DNA from: Syncephalis fuscata S228
Taxonomy: Eukaryota > Fungi > Zoopagomycota
Assembly (NCBI GenBank): GCA_025786725.1
Contig: JAHLTZ010000012.1
Coordinates: 124,001 to 188,000 of the forward strand
Reading direction: 5' to 3'
DNA length: 64,000 nucleotides
This document shows positions 183-36,270 of the stretch, in pieces. Position 1 is the stretch's first letter, and each line of letters begins with the position of its first letter. Position numbers and translations under genes: made by a program. The notes beneath the pieces are model-generated. The model searched no databases and was not told the DNA's origin. It was given only the letters and a program-made list of their open reading frames with translations.

Positions 183-300
183 AAAATGCAGAAAAGTGCC
201 CGGTATAAAGAACGCTGCCTTTTCTGCTTGTTATTCTCGCCAAATTACGATAGGGACAAATTATATTTAAAAAGCCAAACTAAAGCTGCAATCTAATCAC
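183..300 (+). pseudogene. Decayed 3' end of a fourth Cys-rich secreted gene copy
   Basis: Translates as KCRKVPGIKNAAFSACYSR, versus KCRVVPGIKGAAFPDCCP in the copy at 30050-30434. It is followed by the same tail, ccaaactaaagctgcaatctaatcacggc. Confidence 0.7.
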
Positions 301-5788: not shown

Positions 5789-8700
5789 ATGAAGTTCTCT
5801 ATTGCTACCGCTTCTGCTTTGGCCGTGCTCTTCGCAGTTAGCACAACTATGGCGGAAACTAGTTATGCTCCCAAGGGCAATCAATGCATTAAACACACCG
5901 ATAATGGCGGTATTCTTGGCTGCCCTGCCTTCCAACTTCCAAAAGATAAAAAGTGCAAGGTTGTACCTGGTAAATCTGGTGCTGCTTATCCTGATTGCTG
6001 TCCTCGCCCGGTTTGCGATGAACACAAAAAAGAGCCTGAAAGCCCAAAACAATGCATTAAAATCGATAAGAATGGCGGTATTCTTGGCTGCCCTGCCTTC
6101 CAACTTCCAAAAGATAAAAAGTGCAAGGTCGTACCTGGTAAATTTGATGCTGCTTATCCTGATTGCTGTCCTCGTGTAACATGTAGTATTGTTGCTACTT
6201 CGGTAAAAGTGTATTTTTACCGATGTAGCACAAAGGTAACGGACGATCTATGCTGATCCCTTACCGATTTCCTTATAAGGAAATTGCAACATTATTCATT
6301 ATTTTGTCCCAATTGTTAACAATAATTACAGCTATAAAATAGCTGTAATAACATACATTTTAATAAAGACAATTCATTTTCTACGCACTCTCAGGCCACA
6401 TATTGTGGAAGTTTAGTTTTTATTTAAAGAATAAGTTTTACACGTTTCATTGGTAGCAACGGGTAGTTTTAACTTATGCCATTTGATCACTCGAGTGATA
6501 GCTCTGAAAGCCCAATACCCTCACCGGATTTTTTTCCCGCAACTATAATGGAAACACTTACCGATTCACAACACGCCCCAGGATCTGATACACCAATACC
6601 GCATGTCGGAAGTAGCAATCACAACTTATCGTTCGGTGCACACTTCACCAAATATCACGGCCATTCGTCAGAAGATTTAAATTTATGGATTGGTACCGTA
6701 GATTTTGCCCTCAGTGCCCGTACAGAATGGAATGATACCCAACAACTAGTAGCCGTCGTCTCTTTGTTAGGAGGATCAGCGCAAAGATGGTTTATTGATA
6801 ATCGTCAAAATTTCCTAAAAGGGAAACAAGGTTACACAAACATTACAAATTGGGAAAATTTAAAAGACCGACTAATATTTCAATTTCAACCAATACAACA
6901 AGGCCCATCCATAAGATGTCAATTAGACCGTCTTAAGCAAGGCAAACAATCCGTGCAAGAATACGCTAACAAATTTCTTGAAGTAGTCGGCCGGTTACCT
7001 AACATGGATATGCCCGATCAAGTTCATCGATTTGCATCTGGCTTAAATAGTACTACAGCTAGTCAAGAAATACGCGTCCGGTGTATTACCGATCTACAAG
7101 AAGCCATTCGCACTGCCACCTTATATGACACTACGGGCCACTCTATTACTCCTCTAAAAACAAAATACACTGGATCTGCCCCTATGGAGCTAGACCGTAT
7201 GGAAAATCAACTATTTAAATGTTATAATTGTGGTGGCAACAATCACATGGCCAAACATTGCATGGCGGAACGACGAAATATTGATCGACGTGTCCAATAT
7301 GTCAAAAGCAACAATAACCATAACAACAACCACAACAATAACAGCCATAATAATCCATTTAACCATCAACATTCCAAAACAAATAACAACCCATTTCGAC
7401 GAGCCTACCGCCTCGAATTAATTTCCGATGACGATGATGAACCATATTCAGATACGCCTACTACTTCTGAAACGGAAACGGGAAAAGACAGCGACCAGTG
7501 AAGAACGGCGTACGCACTGGTCACAAACAATGTAGCCGACCAATTTCCCCTCCCGGGTTACCTGCCGAATACAATCGATTAGCATCCTTAAAACGATGTC
7601 CATTAATTACACTTAATGCTCAAATTAATGGCCACCCTGCCTTAATTTTAATCGATTGTGGTGCCACCGATAATTTCCTTGACGCAGCATTTGTAATGTC
7701 CTCAAACATTAATACTGAAAAGTATGCAAATGGTGGCCAGGAAATTAAACTAGGTAACGGTTCTATTTGTCGCGCATCCTTGTTTGCTCGTTCAGTACCA
7801 ATTTCAATAAAATCATGGTCCAACTATTTAGACTTTGAAATTATGCCATTGGGAAAATATCAGGCAATACTTGGAATGCCTTGGTTTATGATGTTCAATC
7901 CACAAATTGATTGGACATCTAGAACTATACAGACATTGCAGAATGATCCAATTACATCAACTCCAATTTTATTTAATAATATGTCCTCTTCTACACGTAA
8001 TATTCCATTTAACACTCATATTATTACCCCCTCATTAATGTCATTGGAACAACTAGAACAAACCTTAGATGAACCAGACAATAATGAAACATTCCTCGCA
8101 TTCTTATCCACTGCTGGTGGTACTACCACAGTATCCATTCTCGAGCCTGGCAAGCTTGCTTTCTCTGGTAAATATGCATCCACGTTAAATCAATTTAAAG
8201 ATGTATTTCCAGATGAATTACCGTCCGGATTACCGCCTCCACGTGCCGTCGATTTTGCAATCGACTTAGAACCTGGTCATGCCCCACCTTCACGTCCACC
8301 ATATCGATTATCACGCAATGAAATGGCCGAATTAAAGCAACAACTAGATGAATTAGTAGCCAAAGGTTTTATTCAACCAAGCGTATCACCATACGGCGCA
8401 CCAGTACTTTTTGTTAAAAAGAAGGAAGGTACTATGCGTATGTGTGTCGACTACCGTATGTTGAATAACATAACCATCAAGAACAAGTACTCATTACCAT
8501 TTATTGATGAGTTATTTGATCAATTAGAAGGTGCAAAGATATTTACTAAAATTGATTTGCGTTCTGGCTATCATCAAATACGCGTTCGAGATGAAGATGT
8601 CCCAAAAACGGCTTTTCACACACGATACGGCCATTATGAGTTTCGAGTTCTCCCATTTGGCTTGACCAATGCCCCTGCTACATTTATGCGACTTATGCAT

Positions 8701-11700
8701 GATGTATTACGTCCTTTGCTTGATAAATGTGTTGTTGTATTTTTAGATGATATTCTTATTTATAGTAAAACATCTGATGAACACAATGAACATATTAAAC
8801 AAGTTTTAGAACTTTTACGTAAACATCAACTTTATGCTAAAGCAAGTAAATGTGAATTTGGTGTGTCAAATGTTGAGTTTTTAGGCCACATGGTCAGTGC
8901 AGAAGGAATACATACATGTGCTGACAAAGTAAAAGCTATTACATCATGGCCAATACCAAAAGACGTGTCTGGTATTCGTAGTTTTCTTGGAACAACTGGC
9001 TACTATCGGCGTTTTGTTTCTAATTATTCTAAGATTGCAGAACCACTTAGTGAGCTTACACGTGATGACGTACCTTTCAATATGTCGGGTGCGCCTACAT
9101 TAGCATTCGAGGAATTAAAGAAACGTTTGTGTAACGCTCCAATTTTACGTACAGCCGACCCCAAATTACCATTTATGGTAACTACTGATGCATCCGATTT
9201 CGCCATCGGTGCTGTACTAGAACAAGAAGATGAAAGTGGTAAACGTCCAGTTGCTTACCACTCACGCACTCTTACAAGCACACAGCGTAATTGGCCAACT
9301 TACGATAAAGAAATGTTTGCAATTATGGAAGCTACGCGTGTGTGGGAAACATACCTTACTGGCAAACATTTCGACATTTATACAGATCATATGCCGCTTA
9401 AATACATACGTGAACAAGTCAAAATACCTGCTCGCCATGAACGTTATTTAGAATGGATTAGTCGTTTCAATTTTACTATTCATTACAAGCCTGGCCGTAT
9501 GAATGTCGTTGCAGATGCTTTATCACGACGTACCGATACACCACCCGTCTCTATTAATAACATCACTACTATTGCCCCAAATGATGATTTATTACAACGT
9601 ATCCGGGCAGGATATAATCAAGACGCGTTTTTCACAGGTGTGAAAACATTTCTAGAGGGGGGATAGAGACAGCGCATTCGAAAGAATTGCGCAAATGGTC
9701 GCGCCAATTTCGACTTGGTTCTGATGATGGTCTAATATACGAAATGCGTAATCGTGAACCACGTATTTGTATACCCAAAGATTATCAGTTGCGAGCTGAC
9801 ATACTGCGCGAAAGGCACGACGCACCGTCTGCTGGCCATTTCGGCATTGAAAAGACTATTGCAAATGTGCAGCGATCATATTGGTGGCCTGAATTACGAT
9901 CTGACATTTACAAATATGTTAATTCATGTGATGCATGCCAGCGTAATAAACCTTCTCAGCAACAACCGGCTGGTTTACTACAACCATTACCAGTACCTGA
10001 AGGACGTTGGCAAGATTTGTCTATGGACTTTATTGTTCAATTGCCAAAGACTAAGCAACATCATGATGCCATATTCGTGGTAGTCGATCGCTTGACGAAA
10101 CGTGCACATTTTATTGCTACTAAAACTGCTGTATCTGCTCCAGAAGTCGCCAAGCTATTTGTGGACAATATTGTTCGTCTACACGGCTTCCCTAAGAGCG
10201 TGGTATGCGACCGCGATACTCGCTTTGTTGGTTCCTTTTGGCGTTCTCTGTTCAAATTACTTGATGTTAAACTTAAACCATCAACTGCATATCACCCACA
10301 GACCGATGGTCAAACAGAACGTACTAATAGAACACTGGAACAAATACTGCGACATTACGTAAATTATCATCAAGATGATTGGGATACCTGCCTCTCTCTA
10401 GCGGAGTTTGCGTATAATAACGCAGAACAATCGTCAATTAAAATGACACCATTTTATTGTGATTTAGGACGACATCCAAGAATGGCAGATAATCTTATAG
10501 TAACACAAGATTATAATGACATTACATTAGTAGATAATACCGCACAATTCCTTGGTAAAATGAACATTATATTGACAGAGGCCCAATCTGCAATGAAAAT
10601 AGCTCAAGATCGACAAGCCCGTTATGCCGATAATAGACGACGAGAAGAAGAATATGAAGTTGGTGATTTAGTCATGTTGTCAACTGCCAACATTACAACA
10701 GAAGCAGATAAACAACGGCCTACGCGTAAGTTTAATGCCCGTTTTCTCGGACCATTTCCTATCGTGGAAAAGGTATCTTCTGTTGCGTATAAGTTGGAGT
10801 TACCAAATAATATGCGAATACATCCTGTATTTCATATATCTAAACTTAAACGACATGAACCAAATCCATCTGAATTTGGCGAACGACAACCTGCCCGACC
10901 ACCTCCAGATGTTATTGCCGGACAAGAAGAGTATGAAGTTGAAACCATACTAAAAGAACGTAAAAGGCGAGGCCGTACCGAGTATTTGGTTAAATGGAAA
11001 GGATACGATCAAAGTGAAGCTACATGGCAATCACGCGACGACCTTACGAATGCACCAGAGATACTAGACGCGTTTAATAATTCACAAGCTACTTAAGTGA
11101 ACTTACTATGTTCTTGTTGCGTTCTAATGCCGAGACGGCATTCATTTCTATGGGGGGAAGAATTGTAACATGTAGTATTGTTGCTACTTCGGTAAAAGTG
11201 TATTTTTACCGATGTAGCACAAAGGTAACGGACGATCTATGCTGATCCCTTACCGATTTCCTTATAAGGAAATTGCAACATTATTCATTATTTTGTCCCA
11301 ATTGTTAACAATAATTACAGCTATAAAATAGCTGTAATAACATACATTTTAATAAAGACAATTCATTTTCTACGCACTCTCAGGCCACATATTGTGGAAG
11401 TTTAGTTTTTATTTAAAGAATAAGTTTTACACGTTTCACCTCGCCCGGTTTGCGATGAACACAAAAAAGAGCCTGAAACCCCAAAACAATGCATTAAAAT
11501 CGATAAGAATGGCGGTGCTGTTGGCTGCCCTGCCTTCCAACTTCCAAAAGATAAAAAGTGCAAGGTTGTACCTGGTAAATCCGATGCTGCTTATCCTGAT
11601 TGCTGTCCTCGCCCGGTTTGCGATGAAGACAAAAAAGAGCCTGAAACCCTGTAATATTTAGATTTGATGGAAAGTGGATAATTTTTCTTTATTAGAATAA

Positions 11701-14700
11701 AATATTTGTTAACTTATATATTGGAAAATAAAGGAGTAATTATAGGCGTGTGTATTACATTGTAATGTACAATGTAATATAATGTTTATGTATAACGTTA
11801 AATTGGCCTTATTGTGACCAATGTAACATTATACATGTTACAATCTTCCCTCCTTAAGAATGAACCGACTCGGTGAGCTTTTGTTCGTATTCTTGTATGG
11901 CCGTTTGTGCATTAATTAATCCGTTGGCAGGTTCCCAAGTGGCTTCTTCAAACGGATAACCTTGCCATTTTACTAGGTATTGGACTTGTCTTCTTTTGGT
12001 ACGTTTATCAAGAATATTTTCAACTTCGTATTCAGCTTCTCCTTCAATTAGTTCTGGTGGTGGTCGATCGTCTTTTCTGTGTGAATATTCAGGTGGATTA
12101 GGTTGATACCTTTTTAATAACGACACATGAAATACATTGTGAATTTGCATTGTCGATGGTAGTTGTAATTTGTAGGCTGTTTTTCCTACTTTTTGAATAA
12201 TAGGAAAAGGTCCAAGGAAACGGGATGTTAATTTACGTGATGGTCTTCCTTTATCGACGTCGGCAGTAATATGGGCTTTTGATAATAAAACTTGATCACC
12301 TATTTCATATTCTTCTTCTCTTCTTCGTTGGTCTGCGTAATACTTTTGTCGCTCTTGTGCTTGGCTAATTGCTTCTTTTGCACTACGTACAATGCTATTA
12401 ATTTTTGTCATTAATTCAGCAGTACTTGCTACGTCAGTGGTATTATTGAAATTTTGCGGCGTAGTTAGTGAATCAGCGGTACGTGGTTGTTTTCCTAAAT
12501 AGCTGTAGAATGGTGACATTTTGGTTGATGACTGTTCTGCACTATTGTATGCGAATTCAACAGCAGAAAGTAATTGATCCCAGTTGTTTTGTTGATAGTT
12601 GATGTAATTCCTTAACATTTGTTCTAATGTTCGATTTGTACGTTCTGTTTGTCCGTCTGTTTGTGGGTGGTGAGATGTTGACGGTGTTAAACGAACGTCT
12701 AGTATGTTAAAGAACGATTTCCAAAAGTTACCGACGAATCGAGTATGTAACAAAAATTCTCCCTCTCATTTATTATTACCATTTTTAGACATTATGATCG
12801 GTGTTTAAACACACCGATCATCACACATGGTCCACGATGAAGTTAACACTCCGCCACCGCGTATTGTTTTATCTTTATCTTTTATTTTCTTTTATTTTTA
12901 TTTTATTTTCTTTTATTGTTCTACTTAGATATTCCATATATCCAATAGAACAATATAAATACGCGTATGATTATGACCACAAATAAAGACATTAGTTCAC
13001 TTTCAATATTCATTCTTATTTTATATACATTATTGTATTGTGACTCGTAGTAACCGCAACAGTTCGCTGTATCTACGGTTACATATGGTAGCAACGGGTA
13101 GTTTAAACCTATCCACCTCGTTGCCTTGACTTACAGTGATATGAACCAACGACGTGGTGCGAAATACTTCGACCACGAACAAGCCCGTCAATCTTTCGCC
13201 GACGAACTCATCCAAGATCCACCAGTAACCTTTCGATACCCAGATAACCAGTACGAACCACCGATCACAAGCCACACGAACGAATACACCGATACCCAGT
13301 ACGAACCACCGATCACAAGCCACACGAACGAATACACCGATACCCAGTACGAACCACCGATCACAAGCCACACGAACGAATACACTACTGATACTCAAGA
13401 AGAAATAACACCCATTATGAACCCAGAATTGCCTAACACAAGTTTCGTTACCAACGCTGACTTTATTTCAAGTTTGGTAACGCAAATTGTGTCCCAAAAT
13501 AATGCTGCTACTGCCGATGCTGTTGTTACTGCCGCTGCCAATACTGCCGCTGCTATTGCCGCTATTCCATCTACTTCTGTCACTGCCCCTCCTACTGCTC
13601 GTCCATCTGCCCCGCCACGATACAACGGCAATGATAAGGATATTTCAGTAGAGACTTGGTTGTACCGTGCACGGCAATATGTCAGGTATATCCCTGATGA
13701 AATTGAACGCATCGAAGTAGCCGCCACTTATTTAGATGGCACTGCCTCTAGTTGGTGGCAGAGTAATACTATTCACTCTGACGGTGACTATAGTCATCCA
13801 TATACCACTTGGAGTGCGTTTGCTCACGCACTACGCCAACACATCTGTCCCGGTACTTCGGTAGAAGAAGACGCTTTTAGTCGTCTTCACATGTTACGAC
13901 AAGCCAACAAAAGTGTCAATGATTATACGTTAGAATTTAACAATTTAAGGCACACTTTTCCTATGCCTGATTCCGAAATGTGGCAGTTAGCTTTACGTAT
14001 TATGTTTATTAATGGACTGAATCACGAAGTTAAATACGAAGTACAAAAAGCTACACCGTCTACATTACAATCAGCCATAGAAGTGGCTACTCATTTTGAT
14101 TCGTTACGCAAGTACATTGGCAAATCATCAACTAACAACGTTCGCCATAACACACCTCGTCCAACGCAACAACAACAGTTTCGCCCTCCGATTAACACAC
14201 AACCAAGAAATGGCCCTATACCAATGGAACTAGACACCATTAATCGGTTACCCCCACTCACTGATGCTGAACGCGAAACGTTACGACAAAACGGCGGCTG
14301 TTTCCGCTGTCGCCAATATGGCCACATCATGCGTTTTTGTCCTTTGAATACGGGAAAAGTCCAGCACCAGTAGTGTCAGCATCACAACCTACTGGTGCCC
14401 AACTAAATACTATTTCTGTTGATGCCACCCCCGATCTTCTCTCGCTTACTTCTGATGATGAATTGCTTGTTTCTGCGCCATTATTTCCTCATGCTAATGT
14501 TGTTGATGACACTGATGCACTTTTAAAGGAACAAAGTTTATTGTCAAAATATCCACACGCTCACGATTTATTACGTATCAATGCTCGTTTATTAGGTAGA
14601 AAAGTTACGGTACTAATAGATAGTGGAGCAGCTGATAACTTTGTATCCGCAAATCTTGTGAAACATATTCGCGCACACACCCATAAAGTTAAATACCCAT

Positions 14701-17700
14701 CGACCGTACACGTGGCAGATGGCCGTTCGTATACGTGTGACCGCCAACTGGCTGGTGCGCTCCTTACTTCCACTGGTTACAAAGACCGTTTATCGTTTTT
14801 GGTTGTTCCTTTAGAACACGACGTAATACTCGGTAAACCGTGGCTAGCCCGCTATAATCCACAGATAGATTGGTTAATTAACACTGTTACGTTTATGCAT
14901 GATAATCGACACATTGTATGGCAAGCAAATGCACATAGACAACCAACCATATTGCCATTATCTGCCTTACAATTTAAACGCTATGCTAAACGAACAGATG
15001 AATTACACCTAGCCATTGTACGACCAGCCGATAATCCGCTAAATGAAGCTGCTAATCACTCAAATGACCCATCCATCACTCCAGTATTGACTGGATTACG
15101 CAACGACTTTGCTGACGTATTTCCCGACAAACTACCGAAACAATTGCCGCCAAAACGTGATGGATTAGATCATCGTATCGATTTGATACCAGGCGCAACA
15201 CCACCCAGTAACGCCTTATACCGATTGTCCCCTCTGGAACTTAAAGAACTTAAAACACAACTTACCGAATTACTTGACGCGGGATATATTCGTCCTAGTA
15301 TATCGCCCTACGGTGCGCCTGTTCTTTTCGTCAAGAAGAAAGATGGTGGTATGCGCATGTGTGTTGATTATCGAGCGCTGAATAAAATCACTATCAAGAA
15401 CAAGTACCCATTGCCAAGGATTGAAGATTTATTCGACCAAGTGTTAGGCGCAACTGTCTTTTCTAAGATAGATCTACGCTCTGCTTATCATCAACTACGT
15501 GTAGTAGAAGAGGATATACCCAAGACGGCCTTTCGCACCCGCTATGGTCACTTTGAATGGCTAGTAGTTAGTTTTGGTCAAAGTAATGCACCATCCAGTT
15601 TTCAAACACTGGTAAACTATCTATTTAGGCCATTACTAGACAAATGTGTTATTGTCTATTTGGACGATATTCTCATCTACAGTAAAACACCAGAAGACCA
15701 CGAACGACACCTACGCCAAGTATTACAAATACTTCGCGACAACCACTTATACGCCAAATGGTCAAAATGTGAATTATTTAAGGATGAAGTTGAATATTTA
15801 GGCCATTTGCTATGTGCTAATGGTGTAAAAGCTGATCCAGCTAAGATAAAGGCCATTTCTGATTGGCCTACACCACGAAACGTCACTGATATACGCGCTT
15901 TTACAGGCTTGGCCAACTACTATAGAAAGTTTATTAAAAATTACTCTGCTATAGCCACACCACTTACCGATCTACTATGTCAAGATCGTCGTTTCTTATG
16001 GACCATTGAAGCTCAAAAATCATTTGATATACTAAAGAAGACAATGACCCAAGCTCCAGTATTACAAATAGTCGACGTACATCAGCCTTTCCGTGTAGAA
16101 ACCGATGCTTCTGGCTTTGCTGTAGGTGCTGCCTTGTTGCAGCAAGATCGTGATGGCCATTGGCACCCCATTGCTTATCATTCGCGCAAAATGAAGCCCG
16201 CTGAACGCAATTATCCGGTACATGAACAAGAACTATTAGCATTAATAGATGCTTTAAAGATTTGGCGCCACTACTTACATGGATCGTCATTTCACGCGTA
16301 TACTGACCATAAAACCTTGCAGTACTTCCAGAGTCAACCGAATTTATCAACCAGACAAGCAAGATGGTCAGAACTATTACAAGAATATGACGTATTGATC
16401 GAATATAAGCCCGGGAAAAACAATATTGTAGCCGATTCATTATCCAGACGGCCTGATTTACAACTGTCCAGTTTAACTACTGTCAGTTTTACATATATTG
16501 ATCAAATTAAAAACTTGTACGCCAACGATGTTGACTTTGGTGAAATATACGCCCAGCTTAATACGACAACGCCACTTCCAGCTCTTCGTACCAAGTTAGT
16601 CAAGTATCGACTAACTGATGGATTGTTATATTTCAACGGTGATCGATTATGTGTACCTAAAAATAACCAATTACGTCAAGATATACTACACGATCATCAC
16701 GATGCCATCGTAGCCGGCCATCTAGGTGTAGATAAAACATACCTGGCTATTCATCGCCATTTTTACTGGCCATCACTACACAACACCGTCCACCGCTATG
16801 TCACTTCCTGCGATACTTGCCAACGTAATAAGGCCACTAATCGACGACCAGGTGGCTTATTACAACCACTTGAAATACCTGCACATGCATGGGACTCAGT
16901 TAGTATGGATTTTATTACACATCTACCACTCACTGAAAAAGGTGCAGATGCGTTAATGGTAGTAGTTGACCGCTTTAGTAAACAAGCCCACTTCGTGCCT
17001 ACTACCAACACTGTCACAGCTGTTGACACCGCACGACTATACTTCGACCATGTATATCGTCTACATGGTCTTCCACGATCCATAATCTCTGATCGTGACC
17101 CACGATTTACTAGCCGATTCTGGGAAGCCTTATTTGAATTTACCGGTACTAAATTAGCCAGATCAACTGCAAATCATCCACAGACTGACGGCCAGACTGA
17201 GCGAACCAACAGAACCATCGAAGAAATGTTACGTCATGTTATTAGCCAACAACAAGATGATTGGGATAAATACTTACCTGCATTAGAATTTGCCTATAAC
17301 AATAGTACTAACGCTACTACTGGTATTACACCTTTCTTCTCTGTATATGGACGTCATCCAATAACAACGACTATGCCAGCTGATAGCGATAATATAACAG
17401 TACCAGCAGCTGAGGAGTTTTTACAGCGACTAGAAGCGATACAAAAGGCGGTAAAAGACAACATATCGTACGCTCAGGATAGACAGGCACAATATGCTAA
17501 CCAACGACGTCGAGATGACACCTTCCAAATAGGTGATCGAGTAATGCTGTCAACACGACACACAATGCCACGACACGTAGCAGAACAGTCAAACTCCGCC
17601 CTTCGTACGCGTAAAACTGGCCCGTACACTATCATAGAGGTCATTAGTCCGACCGCGTACAAGATCGAACTACCACCAGGCATGCGCATTCACCCAGTTA

Positions 17701-22403: not shown

Positions 22404-22469
22404 AAACCAACTGAGGCTATTGTCCAATTCACAGCTTCATATAATTAAATAAATGGCCAATGTAAACAA

Positions 22470-23268
22470 ATGTATTAGTTATTATGTTTTTTAGTTTATA
22501 TACAAAGCTTCAGTTTATTCTTAGATCTATTTCACTGACTAATATATAGCATTATTACGTAAATAATTGGACTGGGTCTGATTTTGCCCACTAATTAACT
22601 AATTGTATAGTAAATAAATACACTGTATTTATCATTAACAGCTAACATATTGCAGCTATTATAGATGTTTACAGTTAGCTATAAATGCAACATGCTAGAT
22701 TGCAAACTATAGCAAACATCAAGGCTACACTTATACAATAGTGTTGGGTATCAGAGTGCAAATGTTAAAATATAACTGTTATTAACAACAAATTGTTTAT
22801 TTTGAATACCAAATGATAGCTTTTAAAGATAGCTTTAGTATTTAAGGCTGTGTTGATATACTGCCATTGCTTACAGACTGACGAAATATGCATGCAGTTT
22901 AGTACAATTGCCAATTTTATACCCAGTCTTTTTCTAGCATAAATTGCACATTTTGATAACAGTAATATGCGCGCTAGGAACAAATTATAATAACTAATAA
23001 AAGAACAAAAATCAAATTGAATATAGTATTATTCCTATTTACAGCTTATTTATTTGGTTCAACTAATGTTTTGGGTACCATATATTTATTAGTTTCTGCT
23101 AGCGTATATAATACTTTTGGTTTGTTCAGCGACTTTTTAGTTAGTTACTACATGCAAAAATGTATCAATTAGAACAAAGCAATTACAGACGTATTTGCTA
23201 AATTGTAACATCTATTACAGCTATTTAATAAATGTGGTCGTAATCAACATGTAGTAGAATAGCAATAA
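22470..23268 (+). repeat. Block A, copy 2
   Basis: Direct copy of 330-1134. Confidence 0.9.
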
Positions 23269-23586
23269 TATAGATATATACGGAGTAAGTATTTTGTGTT
23301 AATGACAATAATTATATGTGCAAGGATGGCTAAAGAAAGTAACACTATTGATGACGCTGAATTATCTGTAATCGGTTTTCAACTTTTTATCACAAATTCT
23401 CGAATGGCTGAATAGGTGGGATATTTTATTCGCTGATGCCATTTCAGATGATGTGTTGGTCAAATTGGATTGGATTGACGTTTGTTCACCGCCCATTTAA
23501 GATTGCCTTCTCTCTATAAGTTCTGTTAGCTGAACCATCACTTATTAAACACTACTCAACCACACGCATCTTTCTTTGTATTCAAA

Positions 23587-24934
23587 ATGGTACGTGTATC
23601 ATATCTGGAATGAACTGGAATGAACAAGAGCACATACTAATGGTGATAAAACTCATATAGGTAGCCCCTGCAATTTCATTCGATACGCAACACGAGGATA
23701 TGATCGTAAGTACCACTCCACTACTATTGAACGTATCTTGTTTTATTATACGCCGATAGAGTGTGTAGTATTTATTAGTATACTCATCTGTAGCAATTAT
23801 ATAGCATGATGCCCAGGTTGACTATTACGGAAAGCGTCTAGCCACTTGTTCGTCCGATCGATCAATCAGAATATTCGACGTGAATGCCGAAGGCACTCAT
23901 CGCTTAATAGACGTACTTAAAGGGTAAGTAGCTGTGCGTTGCTTCAACATGTAGCATTTATGCCTTAAATCCATGTAGACACGAAGGTCCTGTCTGGCAA
24001 GTAAGCTGGGGTCATCCAAAATTTGGCACTATTCTTGCCTCAAGCTCATACGATGGCCGAGTCATTATTTGGAAAGAATCGGATGGCACATGGAGCAAAA
24101 TCAAGGAACATGCCTTCCATACAGCATCGGGTAAGTGGTACAATTAAAGGCAAAAAGTCTAGCTCATTTAATCTATTATAGTTAATTCGGTCAGTTGGGC
24201 ACCACATGAACTGGGTCCAATTCTTGCGTGTGCATCTTCCGATGGTCGCGTTTCAGTTCTTTCATTCAAAGGTGTGTCAAGCTGTCATTGTTATAAAAAT
24301 AATTGTTTTATTTACATGTCTATAGATGATGGCTCATGGGATACAATTAGTTTTGATGCACATGCTATCGGCTGTAATGCAGTTAGTTGGTCGTCGGCCG
24401 TTACGCCAGGTGCACTTGTCGCAGCAGCAGGCACAACACCCGATGCCAGCTTTGTAAAACGTCTGGCCACTGCTGGATGCGACAATCTTGTTAAATTGTG
24501 GAAATTCAAGTAAGTTGTGATCTTAGCAGCCAATTAAAATAAAAGTCAGGATAATAATAATGATTTATCAATTTAGTGAATCGTTGAAAGCATGGGAACA
24601 CGAAGAGACACTCGATGGCCATCAAGACTGGGTACGCGATGTGGCATTTGCACCAAGCATTGGCCTACCCAAAACGTATTTGGCCAGTTGTTCGCAGGAT
24701 AAATCAGTGATTGTTTGGACAAAAGAAACACCAGGCACGGTTTGGCAAAAGACATCGCTACGCGCTGAGCGTTTCCCCGATGTTGTCTGGCGTGTGTCGT
24801 GGTCCTTAAGCGGCAACGTATTGGCTGTCTCATCAGGCGATAACAAGATTACATTGTGGAAGGAGAGTCTTAAGGGAGAATGGGAAACAATTAGCGAGCT
24901 AGAGGAAGAGAACATGTACGCTGGCAATCTGTAG
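23587..24934 (+). CDS. SEC13: WD40 protein Sec13 (COPII / nuclear pore), multi-exon
   Basis: ATG|intron, then [71 protein letters not shown]. Confidence 0.95.
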
Positions 24935-25069
24935 ACGCCGATTATTCGAGTACTTTTATATGTTGCTCATTATTAAATGTCTACTTTTAAATGAATTGGT
25001 TTATGACAAAGTAATAGTTTAATAGCTTATGTAATTGAATTAACAATTGACGGTGTTTGTTATCACCAT

Positions 25070-25917
25070 TTAATTTAATAAATAAAGTCGACTGGCAATA
25101 TCTTCAACAAGCCAGTCAAGACCGTCAAGCAAATGCTCACCAGTCTTTGCGCTGCATGGCTCAATGTGCCAACGATGCGTCTCAATAGCGTCAAGGCCAA
25201 GTACATCGCGTATTTCACCAACGGCCATAGCACCAGATAGATCCTGTTTATTAGCCAGTACTAGAAGAGAAGCACCGGCCAATCGCTACAATATACAGTT
25301 GCCATATATTAATAAATATCTACTAATTCAAAGTAATAATAAAACGCTATTTTATCCATTTCTACTTACCTCTTCCAGTAGTAGCCCGTCTAATTCTCGT
25401 TTACAATCAGCAATACGTGCACGATCAGCTGCATCCACGACCCATACAAGTCCATCAGTTCGTTCAAAGTAGTTACGCCAATACGAACGTAGCGATGTTT
25501 GACCACCTACATCCCAAACGTTTAACTTGTAGCTATATTACATTGTATTAATTGCATTAGATCAATTACTCTATATTGTATTTTATCATTTATTATATTT
25601 CCTTTTCCTTTCCTTTCTTTATTATATTTTATTATATTGTAATATTCATAGTGTTTTATTCATATTTTGCATCTCTATTTACCTTTGATGTTCAAATGTT
25701 TTAATATTAAATCCAAGTGTTGGTGATATATCATCTATTGGATCGCCATTAATACGCTTCAGTAGTGTCGTTTTGCCGGCGTTATCTAATCCACTAAATA
25801 AAGTAGATGCTCAAGATTAGCCGGAACAAAAGTAGAAAGTACTAGATGCTTACAGCATAAGCAGCCGCATTTCTTTTCCTTCTGCTGATGCTTCTTTAGA
25901 ATAGTTAATAAACCCAT
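25070..25917 (-). CDS. ARL2: ARF-like GTPase Arl2 (Cin4/Alp41 orthologue), multi-exon
   Basis: [51 protein letters not shown]. Apparent 1-bp deletion near 25873. Confidence 0.9.
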
Positions 25918-26266
25918 ATTCGTAATCTGTTTGTTCCGCTACAAATACTGTGTGCTTTGTTTTACAAAACAACAACTCGCTGAATAGAATAAAGATAATG
26001 AAGCGTTATAAACGGCCAATAGACCACTAGATTAGTAGCACGCCTATCTAAGTAGTAACTTGAGCCGATTCGTTTTGACATAGTTGACTTAGAACGGTGA
26101 AAGTTTCATTCTGACTAATTACTAATACAAGCTTCCTAGTTCGGCCTGCTGTCCATTTGTTCCCCCCCTCTTCCTCGCACGTTCAGCCACTTTACGCTGT
26201 GTATTTTAGGAGAGAGAGCAACGAAAACCACATATCCATCTATTCAGATTATAACAATTTGTCAAA

Positions 26267-28996
26267 ATGGTTAACTTTACTATTGGTAAGTAACATGTTA
26301 ATAGATAGATAGAGAGAACAATAGATGGATGGATGGATGGATGGGCAAATAAGCCATTGTTGGATTAAGGAAACAGCGGCTATATAGAAAGTGACATTTA
26401 AGACATGTCGAACATAGATTGCCATTTGGCAATTTAAATACTGAAATGTAAATAAATAATGTATAATATACTAATATGTAATTATAGATCAAATCCGTGA
26501 GCTCATGGACAAGGTTACGAATGTTCGTAACATGTCTGTTATTGCTCATGTCGACCACGGTAAATCTACTTTGACCGATTCCCTCGTCTCAAAGGCTGGT
26601 ATTATCTCGTCGGCTAAGGCTGGTGAAGCTCGTTTCACCGACACCCGTCAAGATGAACAAGACCGTTGTATTACGATCAAGTCAACGGCCATTTCTATGT
26701 TTTTTGAAATGCCAAAGGAAGATCTACCCGATGTGAAGCAGAAGACTGACGGTGCCGGTTTCTTGATCAATTTGATCGATTCACCAGGACACGTCGATTT
26801 CTCGTCTGAAGTCACTGCTGCCCTTCGTGTTACCGACGGTGCTCTTGTCGTCGTTGACTGTGTCTCCGGTGTATCCGTACAAACCGAGACTGTGTTGCGT
26901 CAAGCACTTACTGAGCGTATTAAGCCGGTCCTTATTATCAACAAGGTTGATCGTGCTTTGCTTGAACTGCAAACCACCAAGGAAGAAATGTACCAATCGT
27001 TCCAGCGTAACATTGAGAACGTTAACGTCATCATCTCCACCTATCTTGACGTAACCATGGGCGATCTTCAAGTCTACCCAAAGAACGGTACCGTTGCTTT
27101 CGGTTCCGGTCTTCACGGATGGGGATTCACCCTTCGTCAATTCTCCAAGCGTTACGCCGCCAAGTTCGGTGTTGACGAAAGCAAGATGATGGATCGTCTC
27201 TGGGGCGACAACTTCTTCAACCCAAAGACTCGCAAGTGGTCCACCAAGAGCACTGATGCCGAGGGTAACCAGCTCGAACGTGCTTTCTGTATGTTCGTTT
27301 TGGACCAATCTTCAAGCTGTTCGATGCTTGCATGAACGGCAAGAAGGATGTTGCTTTGAACATGGTCGGCAAGCTTGATATTGCTCTTAACTCCGAGGAG
27401 CGCGACCTTGATGGCAAGGCCCTTCTTAAGATTATTATGCGCAAGTTCTTGCCAGCTGCCGATGCTCTACTTGAAATGATTGTTATCCACTTGCCATCTC
27501 CAGTCACTGCCCAGAAATACCGTGCCGAGACTTTGTACGAAGGTCCACTTGACGATGAGTGCGCCATGGGTATCAAGAACTGTGATCCAAAGGCCCCACT
27601 TATGTTGTACGTATCCAAGATGGTGCCAACATCCGATAAGGGTCGTTTCTACGCCTTCGGTCGTGTCTTCTCCGGTACTGTCCGCTCCGGCTTGAAGGTC
27701 CGTATCCAAGGTCCAAACTACACTCCAGGCAAGAAGGAAGACTTGTTTGTTAAGTCTATCCAGCGTACCATTCTTATGATGGGTCGTTACGTCGAATCCA
27801 TTGAAGACTGTCCAGCTGGTAACATTCTTGGTTTGGTTGGTGTTGACCAGTTCTTGCTCAAGTCTGGTACCATTACCACCTCTGAGACTGCCCACAACAT
27901 GAAGGTCATGAAGTTCTCCGTGTCCCCTGTCGTGCAGGTTGCCGTTGAAGTTAAGAATGCCAATGACTTGCCCAAGTTGGTTGAAGGTCTTAAGCGTCTT
28001 TCCAAGTCCGATCCTTGTGTACTCTGCTTCACCAACGAATCTGGTGAGCACATTGTTGCCGGTGCTGGTGAATTGCATCTTGAAATTTGCCTTAAGGATC
28101 TTGAGGAAGACCACGCCCAGGTTCCATTGAAGAAGACCGATCCAGTCGTCGGTTATCGTGAAACCATCCAGACCGAATCAAGCATGACCTGCTTGTCCAA
28201 GTCGCCAAACAAGCACAACCGTATCTTCATGAAGGCTAAGCCACTTGGTGATGAACTTACCAAGGATATTGAGGATGGCAAGGTCACTTCTCGTGACGAT
28301 CCAAAGGAGCGTGCCCGTTACTTGGCTGAAACTTACGAATGGGATCCAACTGACGCCCGTAAGATCTGGTGCTTCGGTCCAGACACCACTGGTCCCAACG
28401 TGTTGGTCGACTCCACCAAGGCTGTCCAATATCTTAATGAAATCAAGGACTCTTGCGTTGCTGCCCTTCAATGGGCTGCCCGTGAAGGTGTCTGCTGTGA
28501 AGAGCCAATGCGTGGCTGCCGTTTCAACATCCTTGATGTCACCCTTCACGCTGATGCTATTCATCGTGGTGCCGGTCAAATCATGCCTACCTGCCGTCGT
28601 GTAATCTACGCCTCTTGCCTTACTGCTCAGCCATCTCTACAAGAGCCAATCTACCTTGTAGAAATCCAGTGTCCAGAAAACGTTATGGGCGGTATCTACA
28701 GCGTACTCAATCGTCGTCGTGGTCACGTCTTCTCTGAAGAACAGCGTCCAGGTACTCCATTGTACAACGTCAAGGCTTACTTGCCAGTCAATGAGTCTTT
28801 CGGTTTCACTGCTGATTTGCGCTCTCAAACTGGTGGCCAGGCCTTCCCTCAATGCGTATTCGATCACTGGAAGGAAATGGCCGGTGATGTTGCTGACGAG
28901 AACGGCAAGCTCTTCCAGATTGTTTCTGGTGTACGTAAGCGCAAGGGTCTCGAGCCATCCATCCCACCTCTTGACCGTTTCTACGACAAGTTGTAG
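26267..28996 (+). CDS. EFT2: Translation elongation factor 2 (intron 26286-26487; 1-bp deletion near 27305)
   Basis: [36 protein letters not shown], diphthamide motif [10 protein letters not shown], ends ...YDKL. Strong codon bias. Confidence 0.97.
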
Positions 28997-29256
28997 ACAA
29001 CCTGTCAAATGTCAACACTATTTGATGGATAGCATGCTTGCGCCTATGTTTGTTATTGGATGTTGCTTGTTTGCATTCTTGTTTTTGCGTACCAATATTG
29101 GTGGCTGCATGTTTTTATAAACAATTGCGCATTTGTGCATTCCAATGATATTAGGCCAATTTTTAGTTATTTAGTGTTTAATGCTTGTTATTAATGCTTT
29201 AATAGTTATTTTAATGTTTTAAACACTTAATGATTAGTGATGTTTTATTAATGATG

Positions 29257-29995
29257 ATTTAGCAAATACACCTGTAATTGATTTGTTCTAATTGATACAT
29301 TTTTGCATGTAGTAACTAACTAAAAGTCGCTGAACAAACCAAAAGTATTATATACGCTAGCAGAAACTAATAAATATATGGTAAGCAAAACATTGGTTGA
29401 ACCAAATAGATAAGCTGTAAATAGGAATAATACTATATTCAATTTGATTTTTGTTCTTTTATTAGTTATTATAATTTGTTCCTAGCGCGCATATTACTGT
29501 TATCAAAATGTGCAATTTATGCTAGAAAAAGACTGGGTATAAAATTGGCAATTGTACTAAACTGCATGCATATTTAGTCAGTGTAAGCAATGGCAGTATA
29601 TCAACACAGCCTTAAATACTAAAGCTATCTTTAAAAGCTATCATTTGGTATTCAAAATAAACAATTTGTTGTTAATAACAGTTATATTTTAACATTTGCG
29701 CTCTGATACCCAACACTATTGTATAAGTGTAGCCTTGATGTTTGCTATAGTTTGCAATCTAGCATGTTGCATTTATAGCTAACTGTAAACATCTATAATA
29801 GCTGCAATATTTAGCTGTTAATGATAAATACAGTGTATTTATTTACTATACAATTAGTTAATTAGTGGGCAAAATCAGACCCAGTCCAATTATTTACGTA
29901 ATAATGCTATATATTAGTCAGTGAAATAGATCTAAGAATAAACTGAAGCTTTGTATATAAATAAATAAAAACATAGTAACCAATACATTTGTTTA
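29257..29995 (-). repeat. Block A, copy 3 (inverted, truncated at the junction with EF2 3' flank)
   Basis: Reverse complement of ~330-1067. Confidence 0.9.
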
Positions 29996-30049
29996 ACTAT
30001 TTAACTAATTATATGAAGCCGTGATTAGATTGCAGCTTTAGTTTGGTTT

Positions 30050-30434
30050 TTAATATTTTTCGTCCCCTTCGCAAACCGGGGAGGGCAGCAGTCAGGGAAT
30101 GCAGCACCTTTTATACCAGGCACAACTCTGCATTTGACACCTTCCGCGAATTCGTAGGCAGCGCAGTTAATAACACCATGTTTATCGCGTCTAATACACG
30201 TGTCTTCGCAAACCAGGCGAGGGCAGCAATCAGGATATGCAGCACGGATTTACTAGGTACAACTTTGCATTTTTGATCTTTTGGAATTTGGAAGACAGGA
30301 CAGCCAAGAATACCGCCATTATCGGTGTGTTTAATGCATTGATTGCCCTTGGGAGCATAACTAGTTTCCGCCATAGTTGTGCTAACTGCGAAGAGCACGG
30401 CCAAAGCAGAAGCGGTAGCAATAGAGAACTTCAT
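30050..30434 (-). CDS. Secreted Cys-rich protein copy 2 (signal + 2 modules); two 1-bp deletions
   Basis: N-terminus identical to copy 1. Corrected translation ...[64 protein letters not shown]. Confidence 0.8.
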
Positions 30435-31817
30435 GGTGATGATGCTAATTTGGTAGTAGAAGCTATTAAAAGCAAATAGAAGAATATGTATTGGAGTATA
30501 GAAAAGTAGGATGTAGAAAGTGGGGAATAAAGCTGTTGTTGTACTGAAGTTGGATTTACGCTTCAACATCGCGCTATTTAAATTAGTTTGCAATCCTTTA
30601 ACCGAGCAGTCGAGATCTATCTATAGAAGCATGATGCAAATATGCTAACACCAATGAAAATACATGCATGTGCTATTTTCAAACAACACATAATAACAGA
30701 GCAGTGGTTCGTCTGTAACATTTAGGCCATTTGTCCAATTAAAATCTGTCTAGAATATCAATTTACAAAACATCATCTATCTACTCATGTAAATTATTAT
30801 GGATAAATTGGGATGATATTCAAAGGCCTTGCAAAAAAAGGTTGGTCTTGAACTATACAGAAATGGGGCGCACAGCGTTTAGCATATAACCAATAGTACT
30901 TGTTGTTCTAAGAAATAGAAAGGACATAGCAAATGACACAGTGTCTCGTCTGCAGTAAAATGTCATCAAAATAAAATGTATCCAATCAATAGATATCGTT
31001 GCTCGTGTAAATAATGTAGTGTGTTTTAAAATGATGCAGTAGCTCAACTAGTCTATTGCACATCAACTACCAATTATTATTTATTATATGACCGCTATAA
31101 ATTTAGCTTTTTACTTATTATTAACATAGAAATATTCTTACATAATAGTATACACACGAATGTAACAGTTTATTTTAAAATTTAATACCAAGTATTATAA
31201 ACACTGATACTTTATTAAAATTGTCATTTAATAACTGTTAATTTCAAACTATAATATTTGCGTAAAAAAATAAAATGGCCAAGGTACAAGTTGCTTGACG
31301 CATATGTGTGAGATAGCACCAAATGTATTTGATTGGTATATTGCTGTATATCCTTAACAAGTTTACACCATTTCCACTTCAATGAAATTTAATTAAGTAC
31401 CGATCAATATGTAACCATACTGGTTTGATCCTGGCCCTGCATTTACTTTCTAATTCTATTGAATTCATGATAGAATGAGGAAGTTAACGGATATTACCTT
31501 TGCCCTTTATAGGTTTTGTATCCAATACAACTGAGTAGAAATTAACATGAATAGCCACTTTATATGTTAATAGCACGTAATGTTATTTTCTGTAAATAAA
31601 TACTAATTGTGTGTTTGATAGTTATCGCTTAGCTGGATTATTTTAATTACCAAAAGAGAGACTGCTGTTTATTCATTCACTCAAGCATCTAGTTAGCTGT
31701 ACCACTTATTGCCAAGTACATCAAGCTGCATCAAGCATTTTAACGAAACATTAGCACACAAATAAAGCAACTTCACAAGGGTACTCCATTTATTAAACGA
31801 ATAAACAAGTCGACAGC

Positions 31818-33320: not shown

Positions 33321-34302
33321 AAAAGCGATTTTGGTGTAATTAGGTGGTAAAAGACACTAAAATGCGAACTAAGAAGCAATAATACTTATTTATTTAACAA
33401 TAAACTAACAGTATTATGTATAACTTTACGTAAAATAAAGCAGACTGCATGGTATTTTGCACAAGTATGCATATGGCATATAGATAGCTACCAGTAAAGT
33501 ATACCGCAGCTGTATTGCGTAATAGTATAATGACTGTGGTAATACGCTAATAAATGTACAAAAATAGCAGTTTTTTACCATTTATAGCATATAGACATAA
33601 AATGCAGCAAAACGATTGCCGGATCCAAGTTCTCCATGCTTGGCTGTAAAGAATGGTATAAAATATAGAGCAATTATTTTTGCAAAAATAATTAGTCAAA
33701 ATGCAATTACGTAAATATTTGTTAACAAAAAGGCGGTTAAAATTCATGATTTAAAAGTCAATACTAAAAATAGAATTTGATTTAAGATAAATAAGAGATT
33801 CTATAAACATTAAAGTATAATAGCAAGCTAGTATGCGTAAATACCGATGCACAGCGGTAGCTTATTTCATTGATATACATATAACCTAGATCCTCGTTAA
33901 CAAAAATTTACGTAATTGCATTTTTAACTAATTATTTTTGCAAAAATAATTGCTCTATATTTTATACCATTCTTTACAGCCAAGCATGGAGAACTTGGAT
34001 CCGGCAATCGTTTTGCTGCATTTTATGTCTATATGCTATAAATGGTAAAAAACTGCTATTTTTGTACATTTATTAGCGTATTACCACAGTCATTATACTA
34101 TTACGCAATACAGCTGCGGTATACTTTACTGGTAGCTATCTATATGCCATATGCATACTTGTGCAAAATACCATGCAGTCTGCTTTATTTTACGTAAAGC
34201 TATACATAATACTGTTAGTTTATTGTTAGATAAATAAGTATTATTGCTTCTTAGTTCACATTTTATTGTCTTTTACCACCTAATTACACCAAAATCGCTT
34301 TT
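33321..34302. repeat. Second ~1-kb palindrome: arms 33321-33726 and 33896-34302
   Basis: Inverted copy of 1904-2883 with the same spacer. Confidence 0.95.
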
Positions 34303-35069
34303 AAAATGGCCATGGTTATTAGAAACAAAGAATGGCAGGTTTTGATCACAGTCATAGTTATTGAAAATAAAAGAATAAGCATTTTATAACACTCATGGAT
34401 ATTTCACATTGATGTCAAAGTGTTTACACGATTATTCTAACTATAAACAAATAAGCAGGCATTTGCATAATGACCATAGTTAATAGCACGTGAGACAAAT
34501 ATGTGTAACAAAATGACTATAGCTGACCATTTTTGTTATACGTAATAACAATGCTGTTACAATTTGATTCTAAAAGCTGGGAGTTAGATGACTAAGTAAT
34601 GCTTTATCTTAAAGCTATTTATTGTTTAGCCTTAAATCTTTGTTAATACTTAACACTTAAAATACAATGTGTTATTTCGTTTAGTTAATATTGCGTTGCT
34701 GCTATATTTTTTGTTATTAATTAGCACAGCCCAATTATAATAAAAAGACTAGCTTGTATAGTATTAAATATAAATACAATCTAACTAAAGACCAGCAATG
34801 CTTTTAATATTGAATAGAACTTAAAAGCTCTTCTTCATACATTACTAAAAAGCAACATCAATTATGTAATTGTTCATATGTTCATATTCAACAAATGTTT
34901 ACTCGCCATATCTTTGTAACAGTTGTTTGATGTTAGGAATTAATGATGAAATTCGATATATGCATTATTCTTGTCTGTTCACGTGTAATTCTAACAGAGC
35001 TGTATAATAACATAGTGTGTTAATAATCACGCTTACAAGATGTTGTTTAGAATATAAGAATAGCAGCAA

Positions 35070-35865
35070 TGTTATTGCTATTCTATACTACATATTGATT
35101 ACGACCACATTTATTAAATAGCTGTAATAGATGTTACAATTTAGCAAATACGTCTGTAATTGATTTGTTCTAATTGATACATTTTTGCATGTAGTAACTA
35201 ACTAGAAAGTCGCTGAACAAACCAAAAGTATTATATACGCTAGCAGAAACTAATAAATATATGGTAACCAAAACATTAGTTGAACCAAATAAATAAGCTG
35301 TAAATAGGAATAATACTATATTCAATTTGATTTTTGTTCTTTTATTAGTTATTATAATTTGTTCCTAGCGCGCATATTACTGTTATCAAAATGTGCAATT
35401 TATGCTAGAAAAAGACTGGGTATAAAATTGGCAATTGTACTAAACTGCATGCATATTTCGTCAGTGTAAGCAATGGCAGTATATCAACACAGCCTTAAAT
35501 ACTAAAGCTATCTTTAAAAGCTATCATTTGGTATTCAAAATAAACAATTTGTTGTTAATAACAGTTATATTTTAACATTTGCACTCTGATACCCAACACT
35601 ATTGTATAAGTGTAGCCTTGATGTTTGCTATAGTTTGCAATCTAGCATGTTGCATTTATAGCTAACTGTAAACATCTATAATAGCTGCAATATTTTAGCT
35701 GTTAATGATAAATACAGTGTATTTATTTACTATACAATTAGTTAATTAGTGGGCAAAATCAGACCCAGTCCAATTATTTACGTAATAATGCTATATATTA
35801 GTCAGTGAAATAGATCTAAGAATAAACTGAAGCTTTGTATAAATTAAAAAACATAGAACCAATAC
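35070..35865 (-). repeat. Block A, copy 4 (inverted)
   Basis: Reverse complement of 330-1134. Confidence 0.9.
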
Positions 35866-36022
35866 ATTTTTTTATATTGCTTATTTATTGAATTGTGTAT
35901 AACTTGAACGGCAGCCTTAGTTTGGTTTGTTAATACCCTTTATACTAGGTACTCTCTGGATCTTCTACCATACACAGACTGGGAGGCAGGACAGTCAAGG
36001 ATGCCATGTTTAGTTATTTAAT

Positions 36023-36270
36023 TCAATCTTCTTCACAAATAAACGTGGAGCAGCAGATAGGATATGGAGCGTTGCGTTTGCCACGTATGAATCTGCATTT
36101 TTTATCTTTTGAAGGCTGGTAATCGGGGCAGGGCAGGGCACCATTTTCAGTGTATTTAATGCAGCTGTTGCTTCCGAAAATGTCTTTATTATGATCGGCC
36201 TCCACCATAGCTGTGCCAGCCACAAAGACCACGGCAAGAGTAAAGATGGTGCAATGGAAATCTTCATCAT
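36023..36270 (-). CDS. Secreted Cys-rich protein copy 3 (signal + 1 module), divergent; 1-bp deletion near 36243
   Basis: MMKISIAPS-TLAVVFVAGTAMVEA...NSCIKYTENGALPCPDYQPSKDKKCRFIRGKRNAPYPICCSTFICEED*. A decayed second module follows the stop. Confidence 0.8.

Follow-up and report, generated by a model that had tools for sequence, protein, structure and literature searches.

A truncated six-cysteine SVWC derivative with one to three modules per protein in the mycoparasitic fungus Syncephalis fuscata

Proteins of the SVWC family are treated in the literature as arthropod proteins of eight cysteines (PMC13115929, PMC11515477), and it is this number of cysteines that defines the family (PMC13115929). 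They bind bacterial and fungal polysaccharides (reviewed in PMC13115929), and in the tick protein CirpT1 a VWC-like C-terminal domain forms most of the interface with complement C5 (PMC6955305). Here we describe a family of small cysteine-rich proteins with a putative signal peptide and one to three modules, encoded between positions 5,789 and 36,270 of a 64,000-nucleotide stretch of the genome of Syncephalis fuscata S228 (GenBank assembly GCA_025786725.1, contig JAHLTZ010000012.1, positions 124,001 to 188,000; hereafter the window). Syncephalis fuscata is an obligate haustorial mycoparasite of the order Zoopagales, in a genus on which almost no molecular biology exists. The family, which is expressed and recently duplicated, is a truncated six-cysteine derivative of SVWC and not a canonical SVWC family, and both its homology to SVWC and its modular architecture are near certain. 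An earlier reading of the window from its letters (the original prediction) had called the family the best candidate there for an undescribed system. This stands insofar as we found no paper on SVWC in fungi or amoebae, nor on secreted proteins of Syncephalis, but the proteins themselves are public as "hypothetical protein" (BDF19DRAFT locus tags) with an automatic PF15430 tag. New here is a truncated, tandem-capable six-cysteine SVWC derivative outside the arthropods.

The window holds three copies, which together with their modules are located as follows:

5789 to 6174, plus strand: copy 1, piece A, from the ATG at 5789 through the putative signal peptide, module 1 and a 12-residue charged linker into module 2 up to CC-P-R (from the sequence and its open reading frame)
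5885 to 6016, plus strand: copy 1, module 1
6053 to 6174, plus strand: copy 1, module 2, interrupted by a cut after CC-P-R, with the 5-nucleotide (nt) target site CCTCG at 6170-6174
11439 to 11649, plus strand: copy 1, piece B, with the end of module 2, a linker, module 3 and the start of the tail
11490 to 11621, plus strand: copy 1, module 3
30050 to 30434, minus strand (read from 30434 to 30050): copy 2, with a putative signal peptide and two modules, the second of them divergent
30208 to 30338, minus strand: copy 2, module 1
30071 to 30198, minus strand: copy 2, module 2, divergent
36023 to 36270, minus strand (read from 36270 to 36023): copy 3, with a putative signal peptide and one module; the assembly has a 1-nt gap between 36251 and 36250
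36035 to 36163, minus strand: copy 3, module

The original prediction had seen three modules behind a signal peptide in copy 1, two modules in copy 2 and one in copy 3, and we recover all of these at the positions given. Its module pattern, C-x11-C-x10-C-x13-CC-x4-C, is likewise correct, with a first gap of x10 in copy 3 and in module 2 of copy 2.

Membership in the SVWC lineage is carried by profile matches that reach only the C-terminal two thirds of PF15430 (gathering cutoff 27 bits). Above this curated cutoff lie piece A of copy 1 (37 bits, E 4.1e-9), three single-module paralogues from elsewhere in the genome (30.2-32.5 bits) and two intact paralogues, one of them the three-module protein L004 of contig C351 at 53 bits (E 4e-14) and the other at 38.7 bits; below it lie copy 3 (17.9 bits) and, each taken alone, piece B of copy 1 (22.3 bits) and module 2 of copy 2 (24.2 bits). 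All S. fuscata matches begin at profile position 21-36 of 66, covering about 21-66. Alignment with insect SVWC proteins shows what is missing: the fungal module is without the N-terminal hairpin segment C ... G-x-x-W (profile positions 1-20) and without the second cysteine of a C-x4-C pair, and every fungal module has exactly six cysteines compared with the eight that are the hallmark of SVWC. The non-cysteine positions shared with SVWC are G-C-P-x-F, P-G and Y-P-x-C-C-P-x-P-x-C. With three domains in copy 1 and two in copy 2, the family also departs from the one domain per protein of SVWC. The canonical VWC or chordin-like profile PF00093, which has ten cysteines with C-x-x-C-x-C and C-C-x-x-C motifs, matched none of the pieces at E up to 10.

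Structure comparisons lead to the same relatives. The family profile finds tick CirpT1 (6RQJ, 6RPT) in the PDB at E 1.9e-6, and an AlphaFold model of a single module, with a predicted local distance difference test score (pLDDT) of 82-85 in the module, recovers SVWC-like folds. Aligned with VIA-align against 48,161 PDB representatives, this model has CirpT1 as its sole match at Z>=2 (Z 3.1, root-mean-square deviation 2.1 Å, 45 residues, 31% identity), placing model residues 9-56 on chain residues 38-87. Foldseek against the PDB returned nothing at E<=0.001, and CirpT1 only at E 2.8-4.5. The nearest neighbours in a fold search of the ESM Atlas are arthropod SVWC clusters, with a template modelling score (TM) of 0.58-0.61 over 49-59 residues, while VWC-containing clusters are weaker neighbours (TM 0.35-0.44); a feature search of the Atlas gave one lead, at 0.82, to an arthropod SVWC cluster. 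The resemblance to the C-terminal part of SVWC that had been noticed in the original prediction is therefore confirmed by both the Pfam profile and the predicted fold. We consider that the module of about 44 residues is probably held by three disulfides. A two-module model shows two identical folds (pLDDT 73-82) with a linker below 50 and a predicted TM score of 0.32, that is, with no fixed mutual orientation.

The family extends well beyond the window. A search of the 29.4-Mb genome (371 contigs) with the module profile found 18 full or near-full modules at 11 loci (E 2e-21 to 7e-8), far more than chance could produce, and copy 3 is recognized by the family profile at E 3.5e-16. Single-module genes lie on contigs C90 (three), C97, C361, C1 and C201 (one each), and open frames are intact at eight loci outside the window copies. 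Across paralogues of 36-53% identity, the six cysteines and Y-P-x-C-C are invariant. Two weak partial profile matches at C1:661071-661133 and C1:731747-731809 (E 0.001, positions 19-39 of 42) may be relics. Contamination by arthropod DNA was considered and rejected, since the 726-kb contig of the window has fungal housekeeping genes around the family members and the family occurs at 11 loci.

Inspection and a simple rule give every member an N-terminus of M-K, about 15 hydrophobic residues and a cleavage motif of small residues. In their mature form, all S. fuscata members contain six cysteines or a multiple of six, the exceptions among relatives being a second S. plumigaleata model with 5 and one Heterostelium protein with 7, and most mature proteins are basic (isoelectric point, pI, 7.8-9.8). 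The single-module paralogues on C90, C97, C361 and C1 (L002:1384-1719, L002:2597-2881, L014:1501-1749 and L001:1480-1779) carry a segment R-L-L-R-R or L-L-K-R between signal peptide and module that resembles a Kex2-processed propeptide; in public model P0001 it is removed as an intron.

Transcripts of the family are present in a public sequencing run, X1, which must be RNA because its contig over the Arf-family gene of the window skips three introns with CT..AC ends; the possibility raised with the original prediction that no copy is expressed thus does not hold. Much deeper X1 contigs cover module 1 and continue into a linker of the copy 1 type (loose end at 30206), and we therefore conclude that transcripts of the tandem type are present.

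Copy 1, with its three 168-nt units, is genuinely broken by two insertions of long terminal repeat (LTR) retrotransposons into its coding sequence, a double split that the original prediction did not mention. The elements and the last piece of the gene are:

6175 to 11438, plus strand: Ty3/gypsy LTR retrotransposon within module 2 of copy 1, with gag and pol open reading frames and the target-site duplication CCTCG on either side
11650 to 22383, minus strand: second LTR retrotransposon, inserted four codons ahead of the stop codon of copy 1, with the target-site duplication AACCC at 11645-11649 and 22384-22388
about 12746 to 18320, plus strand: third element, a chromovirus nested in the second one, with Pfam matches to reverse transcriptase, RNase H, integrase and chromodomain
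22384 to 22403, plus strand: copy 1, piece C, the second target-site copy followed by the last four codons P-K-K-Y and the stop codon (22389-22403), identical to the frame end of L004

The Ty3/gypsy element has LTRs of 275 nt (6175-6449 and 11164-11438) that are 100% identical to each other, as are the LTRs of the nested chromovirus (at least 300 nt; 12746-13045 and 18021-18320). An uninterrupted counterpart exists on contig C351 (L004), 98.9% identical to copy 1 and with a reading frame of 606 nt that is continuous across both insertion points, including the equivalents of window positions 11649 and 22384; piece B of copy 1 is 97.6% identical to L004 positions 1621-1831. We searched the pieces of copy 1 separately and used the naturally intact L004 as reference. 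Tandem Repeats Finder describes L004 as 2.9 copies of a 168-nt period with 96% matches, and a two-unit version of the copy 1 type (L007) lies on the same contig as the window, 47 kb upstream (C24:77 kb). At 6160-6256, read-through of module 2 into the LTR would supply V-T-C by chance, which would restore the CC-x4-C spacing; a tail of 26 residues with two further cysteines would follow.

Copies 2 and 3 are a different matter, and their status as pseudogenes was rejected for copy 2 and is doubted for copy 3 after comparison with sequencing runs. Copy 2 as assembled has two 1-nt deletions, near 30248 and near 30077. Contig 5 of RNA run X1, which lies over the unique part of copy 2 (29465-30330), contains both missing bases and leaves the two-module frame open, so that these frameshifts are assembly errors. 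Four public sequencing runs were compared with positions 24700-30650, and they differ from this 5.95-kb stretch by about 17 indels; in almost every case it is the assembly that lacks a base. One such indel concerns the EF-2 gene (open reading frames 26505-27335 and 27332-28996), whose frame is split at 27304 by a missing C in a run of C and is restored by an RNA contig carrying the extra base. Assembly indels are so frequent that any frameshift in this assembly needs read support. Compared with its intact paralogue on C201 (public model P0012; 99% identical), copy 3 differs by one missing T in the signal-peptide codons and one substitution in 249 nt; since the assembly error rate is high, this one-base deletion is probably an artefact as well. 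The frequent 1-nt deletions of the public assembly have truncated public gene models of the family, three of which, all on the contig of the window, are shortened by assembly errors or repeats: P0044 stops at the copy 2 assembly frameshift, P0008 ends within the first linker of copy 1, and P0043 has one module compared with two units in the genome.

Remnants of second modules of the copy 2 type are found at two places:

35925 to 36011, minus strand: decayed second module downstream of the copy 3 stop codon; it can be aligned to copy 2 module 2 as far as the P-G-I-K codons, after which a deletion joins it to the shared 3' flank
183 to 300, plus strand: relic, the 3' half of a second module of the copy 2 type that has lost its CC motif, with the shared 3' flank

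The relic had already been recognized in the original prediction; its homologous region in copy 2 comprises the 3' half of module 2 and the 3' flank. The series of three, two, one and a relic that had been drawn from these copies holds as a count, but not as one process: unit gain and loss in tandem belongs to the copy 1 type, and decay of an old second module to the copy 2/3 type.

All three copies share an upstream element and adjoin pieces of a phosphoribosyltransferase gene, which probably encodes an amidophosphoribosyltransferase:

5641 to 5669, plus strand: upstream element of copy 1, 29 nt, TATA-like
30554 to 30582, minus strand: upstream element of copy 2, 29 nt, TATA-like
36377 to 36405, minus strand: upstream element of copy 3, 29 nt, TATA-like
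3749 to 4411, plus strand: fragment of the phosphoribosyltransferase gene, in repeats of 94-100% identity
31793 to 32553, minus strand: second fragment of this gene, in repeats of 94-100% identity
37649 to 38965, minus strand: end of the full gene, with Pfam Pribosyltran on a long open reading frame; the only near-complete-looking copy

The 29-nt pattern occurs six times in the genome, always upstream of the six subfamily genes beside phosphoribosyltransferase DNA (the other sites being C24:76967, C201:171852 and C351:24138), and its reversed control occurs 0 times. With 28 of 29 positions fixed, the element is far better conserved than the coding sequences of the copy 1 and copy 3 types are with each other, and it stands out as a conserved island in the alignment of copies 1, 2 and 3. 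Each window copy adjoins a fragment or full copy of the phosphoribosyltransferase gene within a unit of about 6 kb that is present in direct and inverted orientation. On either side of the block at 22470-29995, which contains a WD40 gene, the Arf-family gene and EF-2, the spacer of this duplicated unit is found in inverted copies (22482-23256 and 35086-35858; 22647-23137 and 29322-29810). The same spacer contains near-perfect palindromes at 2076-2710 and 33321-34302 with arms of 233 and 381 nt (99-100%).

When 1.84 billion representatives were searched exhaustively with a profile, 41 proteins reached E<=0.001, and 30 of these clusters were looked up. Among these and in searches of word-indexed proteins, S. 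fuscata and S. plumigaleata are the only fungi with relatives, and no widespread described fungal family appeared; the word-index searches added just one member, a second S. plumigaleata protein, and no other fungus. Outside the fungi, relatives occur in the dictyostelids Heterostelium album (three proteins) and Cavenderia fasciculata (one) and in arthropods, namely as barnacle multi-module proteins and as insect proteins named La1-like, scoloptoxin-16-like, MmKTx1-like and HsVx1; several further matches come from metagenome or run assemblies. Among the named single-module matches, the six-cysteine form is common to Syncephalis and dictyostelids whereas arthropod forms have eight cysteines, with one clear exception that is a partial fragment. 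A tree of the modules (88 rows, 47 columns) supports 5 of its 83 branches and is thus too poorly resolved for a donor or a direction of transfer to be named. Approximately unbiased (AU) tests reject neither a single clade of all six-cysteine forms (p-AU 0.70) nor one of Syncephalis (p 0.61), which speaks for compatibility only.

From these observations we propose, with moderate confidence, that the family consists of secreted six-cysteine SVWC-derived modules which bind a molecule at the host interface. It represents an expansion, so far seen among fungi only in the genus Syncephalis, of a truncated SVWC derivative whose gene products consist of a putative N-terminal signal peptide and one to three modules of about 44 residues; the counterpart of each module in SVWC-type proteins is their flat C-terminal subdomain. 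Genes of the tandem type (copy 1, C351 and C24:77 kb) have near-identical 168-nt units separated by a flexible charged linker, and the number of units changes by gain or loss between repeats, while in the copy 2/3 type an old divergent second module has either been kept (copy 2) or has decayed (copy 3, relic). The whole unit of about 6 kb has been duplicated directly and in inversion, and young LTR retrotransposons are now inserting into it. The presumably disulfide-stabilized modules, single or as beads on a flexible string, would be released where parasite and host meet and may target a host protein, as CirpT1 does, or, as insect pattern-recognition SVWCs do, a polysaccharide of the cell wall; each additional module would raise avidity, which could be tuned by module number.

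Several points weigh against this proposal. The sequence family, its homology, fold, copy structure and transcription are established by the data, but secretion, disulfides, target binding and a role in parasitism are steps that we infer, as is the effector or toxin role suggested in the original prediction, and the signal-peptide call is a rule-of-thumb check. In absolute terms the structural similarity is weak, at Z 3.1 and a Foldseek E above 1, although a low Z is expected for 45 residues. The original prediction's idea that the family is diversifying outruns the data, and selection on the loops is not supported: the ratio of nonsynonymous to synonymous substitution rates (dN/dS) between tandem modules is 0.3-1.5 on 4-13 differences, which are too few. 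The X1 contig specific to copy 2 has a low depth (21.8) and continues for about 590 nt beyond the stop codon, so that it could be residual DNA and proves the frame rather than strong transcription; contig depth, moreover, cannot rank expression. Finally, free-living dictyostelids have the six-cysteine form, and the module is hence not tied to parasitism.

Two alternatives would deny the family either its ancestry or its present use, and we give both very little credence. Convergence on a cysteine-rich motif without homology to SVWC might be imagined for a domain that is short and cysteine-driven, with partial Pfam matches and a low fold Z, but independent profile matches agree (the three-module protein reaches E 4e-14 with Pfam, and CirpT1 is found at E 1.9e-6 and is 31% identical across 45 structurally aligned residues) and non-cysteine positions are in common with SVWC, so this explanation strikes us as highly improbable. 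A decaying family without current function, in which the cysteine pattern is a leftover, is just as hard to sustain and already largely refuted. All three window copies do look broken as assembled, and a relic and a decayed module are present, but the apparent breaks of copy 2 are assembly indels and that of copy 3 probably is as well, in keeping with the approximately 17 indels (one of them in EF-2) in the same 5.95-kb stretch; frames are intact at eight other loci, the cysteines and Y-P-x-C-C are invariant, and transcripts are present.

Other explanations accept a functional secreted family and assign it a different task. The proteins could be toxins or antimicrobial peptides which, in the manner of SVWC proteins from venoms (La1-like, scoloptoxin-16-like, MmKTx1-like and HsVx1-like), directly attack the membranes or channels of competitors or of the host fungus. 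Several of the nearest arthropod relatives indeed bear names of venom peptides, La1-like peptides are SVWC components of venom (PMC6563264), most mature proteins are basic at pI 7.8-9.8, and the propeptide-like segments of single-module paralogues end in dibasic RR or KR as in many processed toxins. These venom names are automatic, however, the activity of La1-type peptides is not established in the literature that we found, and a tandem protein of several modules whose linkers have no KR or RR looks more like a scaffold for binding than like a source of released peptides; we therefore regard a toxin function as unlikely. Release of peptides from the tandem type by Kex2 was rejected in its own right, as the linker has K-K and no K-R or R-R. 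An endogenous extracellular role apart from parasitism, for example as a component of wall, spore surface or matrix or as a secreted signal like Vago, would be in line with the same six-cysteine form in the non-parasitic dictyostelids Heterostelium and Cavenderia, with the single six-cysteine clade that the AU test does not reject (p-AU 0.70) and with abundant family transcripts in a general RNA run. Set against this are the occurrence among fungi only in Syncephalis, the rapid copy turnover in a transposon-rich duplicated block that is more typical of interaction genes, and the lack of any known receptor or pathway, which together make such a role doubtful in our eyes. Binding of a molecule at the host interface thus remains the reading that we favour.

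How the module came to be shared by fungi, social amoebae and arthropods raises the question of whether the SVWC domain is older than arthropods or has moved horizontally. Horizontal transfer is possible. A bolder scenario, which we consider speculative and on balance rather improbable, holds that SVWC, a domain of immunity and venom in arthropods, crossed kingdoms horizontally among soil organisms, was cut down to a six-cysteine target-binding subdomain and was expanded into a modular effector arsenal of Syncephalis against fungi. If true, this would be a fungal counterpart of the CirpT strategy of ticks, and the six-cysteine form of dictyostelids would mark the route of transfer.

At this locus a zygomycete mycoparasite has an expressed and expanding SVWC derivative of six cysteines, and social amoebae have proteins that resemble it. 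The derivative reduces SVWC to the smallest part responsible for target binding in CirpT1, which should be of use in studies of structure and function and as a compact disulfide scaffold, and it offers the first concrete effector candidates for Syncephalis. Segmental duplication, gain and loss of units and young LTR insertions moreover amount to effector-type genome dynamics in an early-diverging fungus.

Among described systems, the lineage-specific cysteine-rich effectors and Kex2-processed repeat proteins of other fungi are similar to the Syncephalis family in its putative signal peptide, its small, probably disulfide-rich modules with tandem repeats in some, and copy-number turnover in a transposon-rich duplicated region. 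Those families are without homology to SVWC, however, and unlike in Kex2-processed repeat proteins the tandem linkers of Syncephalis have K-K only, with R-R or K-R found only ahead of the module in the C90, C97, C361 and C1 paralogues. Barnacle multi-module SVWC proteins ("FRAS1-like" in Amphibalanus, uncharacterized in Pollicipes) share the arrangement of tandem SVWC-type modules in one putatively secreted protein and reach the highest whole-protein scores with the fungal profile, but per module they score below the single-domain proteins of dictyostelids and insects, and they are built of 4-9 complete eight-cysteine modules per protein. The dictyostelid "Single domain-containing proteins" (Heterostelium album PPL_03836 and PPL_02763, Cavenderia fasciculata DFA_08872) combine a signal peptide with one six-cysteine module, and one dictyostelid protein is 49% identical to a member from Syncephalis plumigaleata. 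They differ in belonging to free-living amoebae, in having no tandem 168-nt units and in being single-module proteins as far as seen, except for one protein of 727 residues with a C-terminal module.

SVWC itself (Pfam PF15430, with Drosophila Vago, scorpion La1 and the pattern-recognition SVWCs of insects and crustaceans) consists of small secreted cysteine-rich proteins and has the C-terminal motif G-C-P-x-F ... C ... P-G ... Y-P-x-C-C-P-x-x-x-C in common with the small, cysteine-rich and probably secreted proteins of the fungal family, which differs by its six instead of eight cysteines, the absence of the N-terminal hairpin and the presence of up to three modules. The best solved relative by profile, and the sole structural match, belongs to the tick 8.9-kDa family: CirpT1 (6RQJ, 6RPT) has a bulky N-terminal beta-sandwich that is disulfide-tied to the flat domain and that is absent from the fungal proteins, which pass from the signal peptide almost directly into the module and do not show the two-domain build of CirpT. 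Its target, complement C5 (MG4), also belongs to a system that a fungal host does not have. The matched part is nevertheless the flat C-terminal subdomain with most of the C5 contact, and CirpT1, secreted by a parasite, binds a host protein.

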